The translations under genes were made by a program, and so were the position numbers. A DNA stretch of 63,939 bases, the filler included, from Lenisia limosa (Eukaryota > Protista > Breviatea), in assembly GCA_001655205.1 (NCBI GenBank). It is 10 parts of 10 records of this genome, joined end to end, with 100 filler letters (N's around TTAATTAATTAA, not from the genome) between each part and the next. Parts side by side here need not be neighbours in the genome. Positions count along the whole stretch, not along the records: positions 24,357 to 33,682 come from LPNZ01003350.1; 9 more parts are not named here. The stretch is one strand, 5' to 3'. Positions 24,313 to 33,781 of this stretch are shown here, piece after piece (position 1 is the stretch's first letter; each line of letters opens with the position of its first letter). The notes under the pieces are model-generated. The model searched no databases and was not told the origin of the DNA. It saw nothing but the letters and a program-made list of their open reading frames with translations.

Positions 24313-24530
24313 NNNNNNNNNNNNNNNNNNNNNNNNNNNNNNNNNNNNNNNNNNNNTCCCCCAGGTTTATCATATTGACCCCTGTCATTTTTGTGGCCCG
24401 CCCGGCACCAGGGTCATGACCCATGTCATTTCCCAATTCCCCAAATAAGCCATTTTTTATACTGGTCCAAGGTCCTCTATATGGGGGGGTCAGTCCTGGC
24501 TCAAATCTAGGTTGAATCTGGGAGTTTGGG

Positions 24531-27500
24531 ATGCCTCGCGAAATAGTTAGTGTTCATGTTGGGCAATGTGGAAGTCAAAGTTTTTTTTCTCTCCAATAAT
24601 ATAGTTGGAGTATCATTTTGGGATGCTTTATTAAATGAATTCAATATATCTCCTGATGGGTCTATTCATGACTCTGAAAAAGGATTTGATGAAGTTTTTT
24701 TTTCTGCAGTTTGTTTTTATTTGTAAATTGTCAAATGAGAAGCAGGTGTTGGCAAGATCCATTTTCTTAGATTTAGAGCCAAGAGTTCTGCAATCAATTC
24801 AAAAAGGTCCATTTAGGCAATTGTTTAAATCTGAGAATTATTTTACTGGGGATAGTGGAGGTGGAGCTGGTAACGTATGGGCAAATGGGTTTTTCTCTGG
24901 CCAACAGTCTGAAGAAATTATTTTAGAAATGCTTCAGAGAGAGGTTGAGTCTGCTGATTCAATGGACGGTTTCTTCCTTTCACATTCAGTTGCAGGTGGC
25001 ACAGGGTCTGGATTGGTTTATTGGTCTCTGTTATCCAAGGGTTCGAAAGTGTTAGAGGTGATATCCTCCTATTTTGCTAAATCTGCTGTTTTGGCAAATT
25101 CTGTTTTCCCAAATCATGGTAATTGATGAATACTCATCAGAAAATTTTTCTGATGTTGTGGTACAGCCTTATAATTCGGTACTCACTTTAAGAAGATTGA
25201 TTGAGCACACTGATGCTGTTGTATGCTTTTTAATGAATTAACTCTCAAGTGTATTCTTGATAACCAGTCTCTTAACAAATTGGCCTTGGAAAAAAATGGA
25301 GGGCATACTCCAACATTTGAAGACGTTAACTCTATAGTTTGCTCAACTCTTTTACTATTTACTAGATTATGAAGGGGGGGGGGGTTTTGACGAGAGAAAT
25401 AAAATACAGTAGAAAAGTATTTTATCTTTTTTTTTGAAAAAATATGTATTGAATCAAAGACAAAGGAAACAAAATCAAATTAGGACCAAATGTCTGGGGA
25501 AGCATCTTGAAGCGTGTTTGGTCCTCTTCCTCTTCGAGAAGATACAGGTAGCGAACACTATGTCGAGACCACCCTTGGACGAACAAGGGGAGGAAGTTCG
25601 TCAATTACAGAGAAGTGGGTGTTATTTTGGTGTTGTGGACCAGCGTGTACAATGAACATATTATGTATCTTTATATTTATATATGATATACTAAACCTAT
25701 CACATTTCAAATTAATACTATGTGGTAATAGCTTGGAATGGTACTGATAGACTGCATATCTGGGGGTGAAATAAAAAAGTTGTAGAAGCAGAAGTGTGTT
25801 TTAACACTTTTATTTCAATACTGATGTGCATTCAAAATATTAAACCATAACATACTTATTGAGTTTGTTAACTCGTAATAACAAATACTGCATTTAGTCC
25901 TGCCTTATTTTAGCCAAAAAATTCAAACTATTGAGCATATTTATGAAGCTCAAAAACGAAGGCTATTCATAATTCAATACTTTGAAGAATCACGAACGTT
26001 CTTGTGACATTTCGTAGGACGCAAAAATATCACTTTCAGCGTGGGTTGACTAACTGAGAAATCCACAATGGTCAGGGTTGATTACATTAGAGGCACCAGA
26101 AAGAGTCACAGACCAAGATCAGCCGATCTGGTGTACAGACTTCTCCTCCACGAGGATTGGGGGTTCTTGTTCGCTCTCTGGTACTTTCTTTTCCGCCCCT
26201 TTTCCCCCGAGGTTGTCTAGTTTACATATCAACGTACTCGAATTGATTGCAGTACGTGTGCCAACAACTTGTCAACCCGGATTTCGGCAAAAAATAACAT
26301 CACTTCTCGCAGGATGTGATAATCGTTCGCCATCTCATGGTTCGATAAAGGAGGCGCTTCTCCGAAGATTGAGATGTTATTGTAAACAAGATTTGCAGAT
26401 CATAAATCTTGGTGACATCCCACTGGGGATAACAAGTTTGCTGATGCAGCTAGCCGCAACGATGTCACTGCATTGTCTGAGCTTAAAAAGGGTTGATGTG
26501 CCTAAAGCTCTTTGGCCAATTTTGATCTGAAGGTTTTGTTTGTTCATATTTGATTCTGCTGACCGAAATGCGTGATTACATTATTCATATAATCTAGATA
26601 TTGTTATTAGCCTATTACTATTAGACTATGCTGCTAAGCTTGATGTGCAACGTCAAAAGATTAAAAGAATGTGTGTTAGAAATACGACAATGCAAACTAA
26701 TGGCACGGCTATGAAGACTTATAAAGAGATGGGCCATGATATATTATATATGCGGCCATTCTGGTTTTTTTCGCTAATTCTGATTTTTTTCTTGTTTATG
26801 TTTTGNNNNNNNNNNNNNNNNNNNNNNNNNNNNNNNNNNNNNNNNNNNNNNNNNNNNNNNNNNNNNNNNNNNNNNNNNNNNNNNNNNNNNNNNNNNNNNN
26901 NNNNNNNGAAGTCAAGATAATTTTACTGTGCGTTAAATAGACATTGAAATGACGTTGCGACCGAAGTCGTGACGTCTACTATCAAGATATACAACGTTAC
27001 CCTCCCTGGTTTTTTCTAGTGACATGAGAAAGCCCAAAACACTCTCGTAAAATGGATTAAGGCCCATCAAACCCTCGAAAGCCCCGAAGCTATAGGCAAC
27101 GAAATCGCCGATAAACTCGCTTAAAGAGAGGCCTCCAGACCGCTTTCCCAATTCCTCCATTTCTTAGTTTCCCTCATAGCTCAATTTGTTACTTATTAGA
27201 GAAGAACTCCCGCTCGAACCCCCCGCCAACAGAACCCCAGACACCCAAACTCTTCTCGGGAACTTCCATAAAGCCCGACTAACAAACCTTGCGTCATCCT
27301 CTGCATTGTAGAACCCCACATTCGCCTGGCCTCCGTGAATTCACTCCAGGTTCGGAATGTAACAACAAAAATTCCTCCAATCAGCTCTCGAACAATTCAG
27401 GCTCCACGTAATCTCAAACACTCTGTCCACACGCTCGCGGTTCGCACAATTTGAAAGAACAAGCCCACTATGCACCTCACCCAGAATCGTTCCATCATCA

Positions 27501-28808
27501 TGTCGCTTGAATGCCTTCACCTCGGCCTTGTTTGAATAACGTGAGAATTAGACGGACTGAGGGGGTCTATTCCTAGGGTATCCAGTCATTCTTGCTAACT
27601 GTCGTTGAAACAAACTATGGTAATATACGGTTGATTTTAGCACCAAACAACCCTAATGGGTCTTACCTAGTCCCTTGCAAAGAATTTTAACGCCGGCGTT
27701 TGAATAACGTGAGAATTAGACTTTAGCCACCGCGTTTACCTTACCCATGACTACGACATCCTTTAGCCCCATTGAGATCATTACCTTAGTGATTGGTACT
27801 TCTCCAGTGTNNNNNNNNNNNNNNNNNNNNNNNNNNNNNNNNNNNNNNNNNNNNNNNNNNNNNNNNNNNNNNNNNNNNNAAAAACAAAGAAAGTACTATT
27901 TAAAGAATTTTAAGTGAGCCAAACATGGGTTTGAATGATAGAAGCAATATTTTCTCTCTTTCCTCGATGACTAAACGGCCGAGAAGAACTCGCGAGGTAG
28001 GTATTCCGATTTAACTTATACTCCGCCCACAATATACTCCAAAAACCATTCAAAATTCACTAAAATGTTATATCATATATTCTGATGTGTACCAGTTTTT
28101 ATTGAACTTTTTTTAGATTTCTTCAATATTGGCGTCAGTATCATTCCAGTTCAGTCAAAATTGCTTCATGAATTATGACCTGAAATGTTTCATTGCATCT
28201 CTTGTTCCAGTTCCATCCTCTCATTTTCTTTTACCAAGTATATCTTTTGTTTCCAGAGTTTGTTGTTTCTTTTTAATTTGCGTCAGACCTCTCTTACTGA
28301 GACTATTAGGCGATTAGTTCAACCAAGGAACATTTTGAGTTCTTTCTCCACAAGATCAGGAGTTTTTGTATCCTTTTGTGCAATTGTCAGTGGCATTATT
28401 AATGGAATGCAGTTAAACCAGTCTCTTCAGGTTTTGTTTTCCTTTTTATTTGAATTTAAAGGAAAGGAAAGCCATTCAATCAATTCCATGGGGACCTCTA
28501 TCAATTCAACTTGGCTGTTCTCCTTTTAGGAACAACTTTTCTGTCCTTTTAGCAAATCATACTTCTACCCACTTGGTATTTTTTAAAAGAAATTATTTTT
28601 TGGGGTTCTCTAATATTATCCAACAATTTGATAAATTGTGGAGTAGAGGCGCGTTTTTAGAACAGTATAAACAAAACTCTTTGTTTGGGGAAGATTTATT
28701 TGATTTTGAACAATCAAGGTAATTTTTTATTGTTGATTCTGAGATACTGTTCTTGGAGTTTTGGAAGAGTATAAAGAGCAAGAGTCTCCGAATTTTCTGA
28801 ATAAATAA
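24531..28808 (+). CDS. TUBG: Divergent gamma-tubulin, 11 exons
   Basis: MPREIVSVHVGQCGSQIG, DLEPRV, GAGNVWANG, HSVAGGTGSGLG, DVVVQPYNS, MNYDL, IPWGP, LLANHTS, FDKLWSRGAFLEQY. Introns: 24580-24604, 24709-24730, 25016-25039, 25119-25140, 25221-25249, 25337-28116, 28258-28280, 28431-28452, 28576-28602, 28719-28741. Stop ends at 28808. Confidence 0.92.
26030..26460 (+). mobile_element. DIRS-like RNase H relic inside gamma-tubulin intron 6
   Basis: WCTDFSSTRIGG, HINVLELIAV, LAGCDN and NKFADAASR. Homologous to 16690-16960. Confidence 0.8.
26990..27140 (+). mobile_element. RNase H relic, probably from a non-LTR retrotransposon, inside gamma-tubulin intron 6
   Basis: VKWIKAHQTLESPEAIGNEIADKLA* matches the RNase H C-terminal 'WvkaH...GNE.AD.LA' motif. 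In-frame stops present. Confidence 0.65.
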
Positions 28809-31800
28809 TTAATAGATGAGACTATGAGACTATAATAAAAATTTGTCATAGATATTGGCCTTAGATATGACTCTCGGTCAGAAGCAGTAACAAGAGGATC
28901 AAATTAAGGTTCATGGAAAACAATGTCGTATTTCAAAATACTTCAAAGTAAATACACTGAAAAAGCACTTTTTTTACTTTGTACAATTAAGCTGGGTGGT
29001 CTTAGATGCCAGCTCGGATTCTAAGACGTATTTTCGATGATTTTCGAGAGGGTTTCTCACCAGGAGCGTCACATCCCCGGCGTCACGCCTTCCTGCCGTT
29101 CTCACCCGCTCGTTTTGTCTTATTTTTCTTTTTAATAGCATACCTTAGTTTCCGATTTGGAAGAGGCTGGCTTATCTTCATAGTGAGGTTAAGGTTTTTT
29201 GGTGCCCTCGCCGAAACTAAAACATCATTAGTGTGAATTTGAACGCTAAAAAATTAAGCAAGATTGTAAAATGATTGACAAAAGGTTGTACAGGCATACA
29301 TAAACGTTTGTTTAAAAGTAGAAACATGAAGGCATTAGATTGCGTGCGGGGAGTCCTTGTCATTCACAAGGTCGCCTTCTCCACTCTTCGCGTGCAGGAA
29401 CTACGCAATGCCCTTATACCGATGCTGTCCACAAGGGATAGATTGAAGGGATGGTATTCTTGAACCACAAAAAAAAAAGCCTGGCCGGGTTAGAAAATAG
29501 AAAGAAAACAGTAAATGTAAGATTTAGAGAAGGGCTTGAAGGACGGGTGCGGAAGTCTTGGAAACCCAATGGTGGACCAATTCTCGGACGGAGAGGATAA
29601 CTGGAGGCTTGGGCCGACAAGGAACGCAGCAGGCATGGCGCAAATTCTTGAGGGCCATGTCGACTTGTTGTTGCACTTGTAGCGCTGAAATGCTTGTTGT
29701 CATACCCAGAACGTAAAAGTTAACAGCGGTTTTTGTGGTCGGTCATTAATCCCCGGTAAACTTCTGCTTGTCGGCAATTTCGGCTCCGTTGGCCGAGTGG
29801 TGGCGAATCTAAGAAGGTCAAGTGAATGTGTGTAGTTTATTACTAGGTCCAGAATCAGGAGCATAATATCATTAATGAAGAAGTGTTTCTGAAAACGAAA
29901 AGAAAACCAGCTAAAATCAACATGGGTACAGGACTTCTTCTTGGCCATCCAGACAACAACGTGGTTCTTGGGGTCTTCAGTATCGACAAAGACGTGAAGC
30001 TGTTGCCGAGTTGTGAAGGAATGGAGCTGTGGCAGTTAAATAAAAGGAAAAACGACAAGAACCAGTTTGTTGCAGATAAGTCCAACTAACCTCGGTGGAA
30101 CTTCTGTCAAGCCGATAGACAGCAAGCAAAAATGTTGGCACGGACAAGTTTTTGGGAGAGACCTGTCGACAAGAGTTTCAATCAACAAGTGAGACGGGCG
30201 GCCTTCGATGGACTCAAAAGTTCTTAATTGGCGCGCGCTAACTGCTTTAAGTCGTTGATTTGGCACCTTTCATTGTCGAGCTCCCACAGGAAATCATTGG
30301 TATGTGATTCGATATACTTCGCTTATTCTCCTAAACTGCCACTTGCTCCAAGATGTGTAATCATATAATTCAATCTTTTCAAAATGATATTGAACAATTT
30401 ATTCGAAGAGTGCAGTTTGAATATTGATGTTGAGCTGTTATTTCTCAATTTGCAAAGATGCGGGGTGAATATAGTATATCAGTTTTTGTCATCTTTTCCA
30501 GGAGTCTAAGGAAGATAATGAATATACACCATTAGTCTTCTTCTCAAAAAAACTGAGTAAAGGGGAATGAACTGAATCGATTTTTTTAAGAGACTATTCT
30601 AGAATTTTCTAGAATTTTAATTTTGTTTTTGAAAATCCCCCAAAAACGGTCTAAAAGTCTTCAAAAAAGCTCAATAATTGGAGGTTTTCCTGAAATAAGC
30701 TATGAAATGCACAAATGAAGCGCTCGCGTTTTCGGTAGTCCTCGTGTTTTTCACCCCATAAACTTGTTTATATTTCTACCTCTAGGTCGTACCTTTGCTG
30801 GAGAGTTAAGGACAACGTTTTCTCTGCTATAAAGTTAGAATTTGAAGCACACCCAGACTTAAGATACATTCACTGGAAAGATGCTCGGAAGCCAACCCTT
30901 TTAGCCGTTGTGGTGTTACTGGTTGGGCGGCGAGAACGTCGTGAGCGGGCATGTCAGCTGTTACACTTGGTGTAGAGGCGCTACAGAGTAAGGAAAGAGG
31001 GATTACCTTTTTTTTTACAGTGGGCTGGGGGGATACAAGAAGATGTGTACATTTAATGTCTAACCCACAAAAGGTGATGATTGGACATCAAGATCTGAGC
31101 CTTGCGGCAGTGACCAGAAGACTGTGAGGAAAGAAAGCCTTCACAGCATCCAACAGTTTTCCAAGAGTGCACCAAAATTCGGTCCAGACCAGGGTAAATG
31201 ACCTGACACAGGCATAACGGTAGCAATGGTTAATGACAGACGAAGGAAACAAGCAATCAACGAACCATATCCATGAAATCATAAATTAGGATGAATTAGG
31301 ATACTAAAATACTATAAAAAAGAAAGAGAAGAGCAGAAGATAGAAGAAGATATGTCTGTGGCAAAGTCTTACTTGTAAAGCCGCTGAGCTGCTCTAAGCC
31401 TTGGTTTGACATGTTGAGCAAACCCTCAACACAGATTCAAGCTGTGATCCCTTCAGTGACATCAAAGGACAGTACCTTTTTCCAAGAGAGTCTTGCCTTG
31501 GATGGATGACGAAATGCGGTGGGAAAGGTCGGGAAAGCGGTCAGTGGCCAGTGCAATAGGGAAAGAATTCCGTAAAAGTGGCTCTTGTACCTTTTTTTTT
31601 GTGAGGATAAAAAGAAGCAAGATAGGTGTACAAGTTGGAAACTACACAACAGATATATTTCATCAGGAACAAACCCCCACAAAAACCATTATCTTTTTTA
31701 AGCTACCAATCATACTGATATACTGACGAAGCGACAAAGATACAGGAAATAAAAGGACTGAAGGGGAGAACATAACGGAATGATCACAGAAGAGGTTTGA

Positions 31801-32116
31801 TCACAGTGTTGTGCTCTGTTTTGATGAACTAAGAAACTAAAAAAACTAAATAAAAAAGGCACCAATTAAAGAAAAAACTGGAGAAAAAGAAGGAGGAGGT
31901 GAAGGAGCTGGAAGGAGTAAACTTGCAGCAAACTTGCAATTCCTGTAATGCAAGTTTATATCCATTTTGCATTTTTTGGACTAGTAGGTAGTCAGGGTTG
32001 GGAGAGGGTGAGGACTGTGAGGACAGCAGGAACTCCGGTGGAGGAATTTACTACTANNNNNNNNNNNNNNNNNNNNNNNNNNNNNNNNNNNNNNNNNNNN
32101 NNNNNNNNNNNNNNNN

Positions 32117-32783
32117 TAAAGTTCGATACCAAAGTTGTGTTCTTATTTCTGCTCCTAATGTTTTTAAATGTACTTTACGTCATTCAAAAGAAATAGTTGT
32201 TTTGAAAATCTCACAGCGTTCAAAGTTATTTTCACTATTTATTTGGCAGTCAAACTTTCTACCTATAATTAGCGAAATTAGTTGGCTGCCAGTGGAACAG
32301 TATCACTATTGGACTGAAAAACCATATTTGTTCCTTGAAATGGAGTTAGGGTTATCATTCCCTGAATCAGTCTTTTTGGATGGGTTTTTCCCGTCATTTT
32401 TTCAGAGCCTACTCTTGTCAGGTCTACAAATAGAGACGTTTGGTATTCAACATCATGATATTAAACCGACAAATATCCTTATTTCTTCAAACAATGAAAT
32501 TATCTTAGGAGACTATGATTTTGCCTCAATGAGTGTTGAAATTGGAGACAGCAGGTATGCTCCTTTTGAAAAAACAAAAGCAATGGAATATGACAAGTTC
32601 TCCACAGCGTTAGGTTCTGTAGTATTGCATTTTGGAAGAGCTTCTCCAAGTTTTAAGAAATTTTATTGGTTTTTATTTTCAATAATTAGTAATAATTCAT
32701 ATCGGTTCCACACATTGGAACTACTTTTTAGTATTATTTCTTTATGTCTTGACAATGAACAATCTGTGTTGGATATGATATAA
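32117..32783 (+). CDS. Divergent protein kinase (5' end in gap), no introns seen
   Basis: IVVLKI, YLFLEME, HHDIKPTNILIS and ILGDYDFAS (DFG changed to DYD). Confidence 0.75.
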
Positions 32784-33781
32784 CTCTGCGGTTGTCAATA
32801 ATTCGCCGTGTGGCTGGGTTTTTATGTGTTTTTCTTTACTTTTTCTAATTCACTACGAGAAAGTTTTTTGATGGTGCCACCCTTTTTGAAAAGGAGCTTG
32901 AAACTACTACTACAACAAGGAGTTTCTTTAATGTAGTTAAAGTTGGTTGTTGTCGTATGCAAGAGAAAAGCCGTAAAAGAACTAGTAGCGAGAGGTCTTA
33001 CACAAGACTTACATTCGCCTATGTCAGATGCCAAACTGCTTTCAAGGTTTTATCACCAACGTTGGTTGGGTCAAATAACTTCTGAGCCATGATTGATGTT
33101 ATATTGGGCACATTGAAAGTTCTTAAACCTAAATGAAATAAATGGTATTTGACAGGTGAGAGATATACTAAGGCTGCTTTTGATGTCAAAGAATTCTTCA
33201 GAATTAAAGATTTTGTCTTAAGATTTTGCTTTCGATGTAGTAAAAACCTGTTCGATGTTCACTAGCCGGAAAGCTTTCCATTATAACAATAAAAACCTTT
33301 TTCTTCTCCCACTCTCCTCCTCTTTTAAATATTCGTTAAATATAATGAAAAAGAAAGAATTACTTTACTGATGGCAACGAACTTGGTTGCACATGCGGTC
33401 GGAGGAGCGCGTTGAAAGCCTCGAAGGGCATACAGAAAAGCCTGAGGAACTGGGGCATATCCTTAACATTGACACTGGTGTCACCTCAAGGCTAAGATGC
33501 TTGCCGCCAAGGAGTTAGGCATTGAGTTCAACGCACCCGAGAGAGTGAGGCGGCGGGCGGGGGTATTTTGCACGTTTAATCTATAGTAGATATATCTATA
33601 TGATATAATACTCTACATAAAGAGAGAAAAAGTGGGGCGGCGGCGGAGGGAGGGGGTATATCATACATGTATAATATATTGCNNNNNNNNNNNNNNNNNN
33701 NNNNNNNNNNNNNNNNNNNNNNNNNNTTAATTAATTAANNNNNNNNNNNNNNNNNNNNNNNNNNNNNNNNNNNNNNNNNNN

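Follow-up and report, generated by a model that had tools for sequence, protein, structure and literature searches.

The window, a stretch of 63,939 nucleotides of Lenisia limosa DNA joined from ten parts of assembly GCA_001655205.1, carries a gamma-tubulin gene with 11 exons and 10 introns, five of which are candidate GT-TG introns (numbered #1 to #5) in the model that we favor:

24531..28808, plus strand: gamma-tubulin gene, start codon ATG at 24531, stop codon TAA at 28806-28808
24580..24604, plus strand: intron 1, 25 nt, GT-AG, phase 1, matching mammalian TUBG1 intron 1 (after residue 16) in both position and phase
24709..24730, plus strand: intron 2 (#1), 22 nt, candidate GT-TG, phase 0, corresponding to mammalian intron 2 (after residue 54)
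25016..25039, plus strand: intron 3, 24 nt, GT-AG, in frame and stop-free, newly recognized, concealed in a long genomic open reading frame
25119..25140, plus strand: intron 4, 22 nt, GT-AG, phase 1
25221..25249, plus strand: intron 5, 29 nt, GT-AG, phase 0, at the position of mammalian intron 6 (after residue 202)
25337..28116, plus strand: intron 6, long, GT-AG, at the position of mammalian intron 7 (after residue 231)
28258..28280, plus strand: intron 7 (#2), 23 nt as GT-TG, or 29 nt as GT-AG ending at 28286, probably corresponding to mammalian intron 8
28431..28452, plus strand: intron 8 (#3), 22 nt, candidate GT-TG, phase 0
28576..28602, plus strand: intron 9 (#4), 27 nt, candidate GT-TG, phase 0, in frame and stop-free, corresponding to mammalian intron 10 (after residue 386)
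28719..28741, plus strand: intron 10 (#5), 23 nt, candidate GT-TG, phase 2

With TG ends at all five segments the gene encodes 426 amino acids without an in-frame stop, and neither stop codon nor frameshift interrupts its 1281 coding bases. Both the GTPase domain and full-length similarity place the product among the gamma-tubulins: exon 3 matches Pfam Tubulin (PF00091, the tubulin GTPase domain), the all-TG protein scores 457.3 bits against an HMM built from 21 gamma-tubulins, and its top BLASTP matches are gamma-tubulins at ~42% identity over their full length. Contig L001 (NODE_1515 of ENA assembly ERZ3820729) is 100% identical to all non-N stretches and replaces the gaps by real sequence, of 192, 72 and 37 bases. 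It spans both N gaps of the gene at that identity, so the gene is continuous; because both gaps fall inside the long intron 6, the reading frame is untouched by them. A contig from the DNA run provides a second bridge, crossing 27811-27879 with 72 letters. Intron 6, which also holds repeated DNA visible as depth peaks, occupies 2780 places of the window and ~2873 nt in the gap-free contig.

The initial annotation had asked for a check against a dropped A (TAG read as TG). DNA-run contigs show no difference from the gene, at a word depth of ~36-38 and without variant letters. Both assemblies and the DNA run may share one read set, so these sources are not fully independent, a point in favor of an artefact; even so, the loss of one identical base at each of five intron ends, with no such loss in the coding bases, is unlike either error or decay. 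The alternative that the gene is a decaying copy, with a working gene elsewhere, must likewise contend with intact exons, with representation of the gene in the RNA run and with the absence of a second gamma-tubulin copy from all protein searches made. We regard artefact or a dead gene as very improbable. The representative protein search gave a sole 100% match, the genomic open reading frame of exon 3 (P0001; next best 51%), whose cluster has a single member; exons 8-9 as query gave no match, the profile search returned distant gamma-tubulins only, and the neighboring kinase as protein query matched only itself. Representative, cluster and profile searches of protein collections found no transcript-derived protein of this organism. 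A metagenome contig scan found no relatives, Pfam had no match to seven non-genic open reading frames, of which four lie within intron 6 and three past the end of the gene, and Rfam and repeat searches over the piece that holds the gene were likewise empty.

Nine of the ten introns measure 22-29 nt. Mini-introns 1, 4 and 5 confirm the statement of the initial annotation that the gene has canonical GT-AG introns of this size, and intron 3 can now be added. It showed up because it puts 8 extra residues into a window that is otherwise invariant in the family; with it excised the HMM score is 457.3 bits, up from 442.3. It also serves as a positive control, in that the spacing test applied below flagged one insertion there, with limits falling exactly at GT...AG (25016-25039).

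The five further segments proposed in the initial annotation are confirmed at their places, each starting with GT and ending in TTG or CTG. Their T content is 56-73%, versus 35% for exons (#4 is 89% A+T), they begin GTTTGT, GTTTGT, GTTTTG, GTATTT and GTAATT in order, and A residues are present within the last 13 bases of each. Thus 5 of 5 have the GT of U2-type introns, while the boundaries demanded by frame and homology end in TG rather than AG. U12-type (minor) introns resemble these in having a 3' terminal dinucleotide not fixed to AG, but their defining 5' motif, RTATCCTT, is missing from all five, and we rejected that class. Excision at the DNA level was rejected as well, the DNA run containing no joint that lacks the segments.

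An AG lies within 13 nt of every one of the TG ends (nearest at +9, +6, +9, -13 and +2 nt for #1 to #5). Those downstream of #1, #2 and #3, at 24739, 28286 and 28461, are in frame, as had been pointed out in the initial annotation; their use would give introns of 29-31 nt with an ordinary look and would drop three residues at each of #1 and #3. At #4 the lone AG, at intron base 14, shifts the frame. At #5 the AG at 28742-28743, 2 nt on, throws the reading out of frame so that the conserved C-terminus is replaced, and no later AG restores the frame. Because the nearby AGs cause frameshifts at #4 and #5, TG would, judging from the reading frame, be the sole productive site at these two. Segment #4 could also stay in the mRNA as nine extra residues.

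Two of the segments have exact counterparts elsewhere: #1 and #4 share position and phase with mammalian TUBG1 introns 2 and 10, as three GT-AG introns of the gene do with other mammalian introns, and five or six positions are common to this gene and a mammal. This comparison of gene structures shows #1 and #4 to lie at ancient intron positions. No counterpart of #3 or #5 was found among the introns of mammalian or Klebsormidium genes, and the Klebsormidium gene structure has none of the non-mammalian positions in common with this one.

We measured the spacing in 135 gamma-tubulins and found it near-invariant around #1, #3, #4 and #5. The interval F52-R63, which contains #1, is 12 aa in 133 of the 135 members; TG splicing gives 12 and AG splicing 9. 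Around #3, 118 of the 135 have 15 aa in the interval L337-W351, with 15 obtained by TG and 12 by AG; around #4, 133 have 16 aa in the interval H381-D396, with 16 obtained by TG and 25 by retention. The interval S424-Y435 at #5 is 12 aa in all 135, a length reached by TG only. At #2 the adjoining loop is of variable length across the family. By HMM score, the cost of using AG was 11.9 bits at #1, 2.9 at #2, 9.0 at #3 and 16.2 at #5, and that of retaining #4 was 9.9 bits. The initial annotation had claimed that TG splicing restores the alignment at every junction; positions, spacing and HMM scores bear this out for #1, #3, #4 and #5, whereas the AG at 28286 serves #2 equally well, which leaves its acceptor between TG and AG. 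The protein does deviate from the family beside variable loops in otherwise invariant windows; small deletions are therefore not impossible.

When frame-preserving excisions were enumerated blind to their end letters, the best lengths for #1, #3, #4 and #5 were 22, 22, 27 and 23 nt, and given a GT start the end was TG in 4 of 4. With the chance of TG as a given end dinucleotide estimated at ~0.07-0.1, the pattern of TG ends is beyond chance. Other local readings were tried and rejected. If a GT-AG intron of 16 nt immediately before #1 is removed instead, the near-invariant window keeps, as judged by eye, six residues too many, and this excision falls outside the top-scoring ones; reading #4 as a GT-AG intron of 14 nt leads out of frame to a stop. 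For #5, two readings, GG-AG (26 nt) and AA-AG (23 nt), require a 5' end other than GT, the former also shortening an invariant spacing at a cost of 6.6 bits, and ribosomal frameshifting after AG splicing still leaves the spacing one residue short.

If splicing were instead strictly canonical, with AG at 24739, 28286, 28461 and 28743 and with 28576-28602 translated as nine residues, the product would be an aberrant protein with a replaced C-terminus. In favor of this, U2-type introns as a rule end in AG, AG is the 3' signal in published surveys of ultra-short animal introns (PMC13644364), and this gamma-tubulin is very divergent, at ~42% identity. Yet the all-canonical model scores 407.5 bits, a loss of 49.8 from the all-TG model. 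Splicing #5 at TG opens a frame whose C-terminus has the spacing kept throughout the family and which then reaches a stop codon, while the AG frame leads to an unrelated tail and a protein 12 residues shorter. This alternative further needs chance to have put a TG, five times over, just where the alignment is restored, and would translate #4, an A+T-rich segment at an ancient intron position. We therefore hold it to be improbable.

The RNA run also bears on whether the segments are removed. The shares of the gene's 31-mers present in it were 0.62 and 0.65, where 0.58-0.68 is expected with all mini-introns removed, although patchy coverage could likewise lower such shares. They reject transcripts left unspliced (P < 1e-10) and transcripts that keep both #4 and #5 (P ≤ 0.0014). 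Intron 31-mers thus appear to be lost from the RNA run, in shares that fit mini-intron removal.

We conclude that these are probably, though by no means certainly, true spliceosomal mini-introns in a functional gamma-tubulin gene, with at least four of them (#1, #3, #4 and #5) spliced at TG. As far as the gene's own letters can tell, a normal protein from it would need TG ends in four or five of the ten introns. The suggestion in the initial annotation that the 3' end is set by length takes the form here of a simple distance rule that fits all nine mini-introns: "first AG or TG at least 18 nt from the 5' GT" predicts 9 of 9 ends. Both the rule and the exact RNA junctions at TG are inferred. 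Mechanistically, the second catalytic step in these introns of 22-29 nt may take the earliest G that has an A or T before it at a distance of ~18-22 nt or more from the 5' GT; the intron-final G would be retained as a requirement, and the base before it could be either A or T. Budding yeast offers a partial likeness, in that the choice of acceptor comes late and falls on the first suitable site past the branch point, and proofreading factors count less when the distance from branch to acceptor is very short; the difference is that yeast still uses YAG and that UUG acceptors work poorly. It is conceivable, if somewhat doubtful, that such a relaxed 3' rule for mini-introns extends genome-wide, with TG constitutive in a large share of T-rich introns.

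In 36 human genes, experiments have verified TG as a 3' splice site (Szafranski et al. 2007, PMC2374985). The phenomenon, which the initial annotation could not confirm to be undescribed, is thus not wholly so, and obligatory, frequent use alone would be new. The human acceptors are minor or alternative and never the sole site, with ~0.01% of candidate TGs used, and human AG-to-TG mutants activate other AGs (PMC2374985). Like the segments here, human TG sites end GT...TG introns with ordinary 5' sites, have a pyrimidine at -3 and an AG close by (within a human limit of 28 nt, inside which all five segments fall). They differ in that TG appears obligatory here at #4 and #5, judged by the reading frame, and would serve four or five of the ten introns of one gene.

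This likeness is one reason to consider mixed use, in which TG would serve only at #4 and #5 or as the partner of AG in a tandem, and #1 to #3 would be spliced mainly at the downstream AG, shortening the protein by 2-3 residues per site. Human TG sites are always in tandem with an AG at ≤ 28 nt (PMC2374985), and all five TGs here have one at ≤ 13 nt; splicing of #1 to #3 at their in-frame AGs, which lie 9, 6 and 9 nt further on, would yield introns resembling the canonical one of 29 nt, and at #2 the change costs little. Against this, AG at #1 and #3 breaks spacings kept in nearly all members at the former and most at the latter, with the higher HMM costs given above, and the first-AG-or-TG rule gives TG at #1, #2 and #3. 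Mixed use is in our judgment unlikely, though a serious contender, and we retain TG splicing of at least four segments as the preferred reading.

The architecture of the gene recalls the ultra-short introns of Dicyema and the myxobolid myxozoans (PMC13644364, PMC6543705, PMC2222250), in having introns of 22-29 nt with a weak 5' signal (GT, with A or T often next) and without a real polypyrimidine tract, in the retention of introns at positions conserved in animals and in a fast-evolving protein. The difference is that those studies give AG as the 3' signal, with TG ends unmentioned. If the relaxed 3' rule does extend genome-wide, gene finders that accept only GT-AG introns would get the models of such genes systematically wrong, and this might be one cause of the low completeness scores that have been reported where introns are ultra-short.

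The 3' AG is among the most constant signals of eukaryotic gene expression, and the only accepted TG acceptors we know of are rare human alternatives dependent on an adjoining AG. Should TG splicing hold here, with several introns of an essential gene having no productive acceptor but TG in this lineage, the second step of splicing could evidently run on distance and a terminal G, annotation of genomes with ultra-short introns would need to allow non-canonical acceptors, and Lenisia limosa would offer a natural system in which to study 3' site choice.

The five GT...TG segments that the initial annotation had described in the gamma-tubulin gene are real: all lie exactly where it placed them, start with GT and end in TTG or CTG, with a T content of 56-73% vs 35% in exons. 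The canonical GT-AG mini-introns that it reported from the same gene were likewise recovered (24580-24604, 25119-25140 and 25221-25249), and a fourth emerged from the analysis below.

Introns of the gamma-tubulin gene (plus strand), with counterparts in mammalian TUBG1
24580-24604, plus: GT-AG mini-intron, intron 1; after residue 16, phase 1
24709-24730, plus: GT...TG segment #1, intron 2; after residue 54, phase 0
25016-25039, plus: hidden GT-AG intron, 24 nt, in frame, stop-free, inside the long exon-3 ORF
25119-25140, plus: GT-AG mini-intron
25221-25249, plus: GT-AG mini-intron, 29 nt; after residue 202
25337-28116, plus: long GT-AG intron, ~2.9 kb (1184-4056 of contig L001); after residue 231
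28258-28280, plus: segment #2, intron 7; probably after residue 281
28431-28452, plus: segment #3, intron 8
28576-28602, plus: segment #4, intron 9; after residue 386, phase 0
28719-28741, plus: segment #5, intron 10

The gene (plus strand, ATG at 24531, TAA at 28806-28808) lies within the piece 24357-33682. Its exon 3 matches Pfam Tubulin, and the assembled model scores 457 bits with an HMM from 21 gamma-tubulins at ~42% identity to typical members; we therefore regard it as a genuine gamma-tubulin that evolves fast. An independent contig (L001; SPAdes, from an ENA assembly) matches the four non-N stretches of the piece at 100% identity and, being gap-free, reveals three N gaps as mis-sized: 26806-26907 (102 in the window vs 192 bases), 27811-27879 (69 vs 72, also spanned by a DNA-run contig with 72 letters) and 32057-32116 (60 vs 37). 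Both gaps inside 24709-28741 fall in the long intron; thus the gene halves are contiguous and the question of frame does not arise. No difference from the gene was listed for the DNA-run contigs, at a word depth of ~36-38. Sequence error or pseudogene status is accordingly very improbable: the exons are intact, and five identical changes would have to be confined to intron ends.

As the initial annotation had cautioned, an in-frame AG follows three of the segments, at 9 nt (#1), 6 nt (#2) and 9 nt (#3). At #4 the first AG sits at intron base 14, and its use would lead out of frame to a stop; no further AG occurs in the 46 nt inspected from the 5' end of the intron. At #5 an AG 2 nt downstream shifts the frame, which no later AG restores. 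We compared the alternatives with 135 aligned gamma-tubulins sampled across the eukaryotes, among which spacing around four of the five junctions is almost invariant, and by the loss in bits relative to a model with all five introns ending at TG.

Spacing and bit cost at the five junctions
#1, F52-R63: 12 aa in 133/135; TG gives 12, AG 9; AG costs 11.9 bits
#2, adjoining a variable loop, where spacing does not discriminate TG from AG; AG costs 2.9 bits
#3, L337-W351: 15 aa in 118/135; TG gives 15, AG 12; AG costs 9.0 bits
#4, H381-D396: 16 aa in 133/135; TG gives 16, retention 25; retention costs 9.9 bits
#5, S424-Y435: 12 aa in 135/135; TG gives 12, AG a frameshift, GG-AG 11; AG costs 16.2 bits
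All canonical: 49.8 bits

When all frame-preserving excisions were enumerated with end letters ignored, the best lengths for #1 to #5 were 22, 17-23, 22, 27 and 23 nt. For #1, #3, #4 and #5 the TG interpretation is well supported, if indirectly; between TG and AG at #2 the evidence is undecided. Canonical splicing throughout is improbable, since the protein would break four near-invariant spacings and lose its conserved C-terminus.

As calibration, the model deviates at three places among 254 family-invariant 12-residue windows. Two adjoin variable loops; the third is an insertion of eight residues, encoded by DNA (25016-25039) that starts precisely at a GT and ends precisely at an AG; taking it out adds 15 bits. 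Because this insertion is a hidden canonical intron, the spacing test does detect true introns in this gene, in-frame, stop-free introns like #4 do occur in it, and the database ORF of exon 3 (P0001) carries eight spurious residues (VYWSLLSK).

Introns of mammalian TUBG1, mapped exactly at a camel locus, follow residues 16 (phase 1), 54, 110, 133, 159 (phase 2), 202, 231, 281, 332 and 386, the others being in phase 0. The matching positions of #1 and #4 mark these as ancient spliceosomal introns, not coding insertions; #2 probably corresponds to the intron after residue 281, with a deletion in the loop there. The single ~2.9 kb intron, amid nine of 22-29 nt, sits at the conserved position of mammalian intron 7. 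It contains repeated DNA (DNA-run depth ~180 at 26710-26863 and 110-120 at 27480-27787, vs ~36 elsewhere), and Pfam found no recognisable protein domain in four ORFs from it.

A poly(A) RNA run belonging to the same study contained 0.62 and 0.65 of the 31-mers sampled from the respective gene halves, against an expectation of 0.58-0.68 with every mini-intron removed and 0.89-0.98 with none removed; such shares cannot place junctions, and patchy coverage would lower them too. They reject absence of splicing (P < 1e-10), make joint retention of #4 and #5 unlikely (P <= 0.0014) and weakly disfavour retention of single introns (P 0.03-0.4). No transcript-derived protein of the source organism was found in protein collections.

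A list of all AG and TG dinucleotides that follow the 5' GT of the mini-introns yielded a single distance rule: in 9/9 mini-introns (four AG, five TG) the 3' end is the first AG or TG at least 18 nt from the GT, all earlier such dinucleotides lying at <=17 nt. A rule restricted to AG does not account for #4 and #5. The main alternative is mixed use, with TG at #4 and #5 only and the in-frame AGs, perhaps in tandem with TG, serving the first three segments; we consider this rather unlikely. We lean towards these being spliceosomal mini-introns of which no fewer than four (#1, #3, #4 and #5) are cut at TG; the spliceosome would then pick its acceptor by distance plus a terminal G.

TG-ending introns are also T-richer than the AG-ending mini-introns (32-52%), and three of them are built on a GTTT(T)G...TTTA(A)TTTG-like plan, as though belonging to a class of their own. 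Two further observations concern flanking DNA. A stretch of about 60 bases directly 5' of the gene (24434-24496) is present, with two letters changed, in a second DNA-run contig (bin depth of 95 vs ~36, loose ends listed at both edges), which looks like a short dispersed repeat on the promoter side. An intron-free 270 aa ORF at 31998-32783 (7888-8700 of L001) weakly matches protein kinase (28.6 bits, short of the Pfam cut-off of 31.7) and has, among 5.8 billion proteins, no relative besides itself.

In humans, TG acceptors have been verified in 36 genes, where each had an AG no more than 28 nt away and served as an alternative to it, never on its own (PMC2374985). Each of the five TGs in this gene likewise lies no more than 13 nt from an AG, which at #4 and #5, however, would be unproductive. 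Among animals, only Dicyema and myxobolid myxozoans are known to have introns of 22-29 nt (PMC13644364, PMC6543705, PMC2222250); AG is the reported 3' signal of ultra-short introns (PMC13644364), and TG ends are not mentioned for those of animals (PMC13644364, PMC6543705, PMC2222250). Our search of the literature on GT-TG and non-canonical splicing in these lineages found no such report. The present sequence resembles them in intron sizes, intron positions common to mammal and ~37% G+C, a likeness only. Should RNA confirm the use of TG, a known rarity would gain a new form, one that matters for the mechanism of splicing and for how such genomes are annotated.
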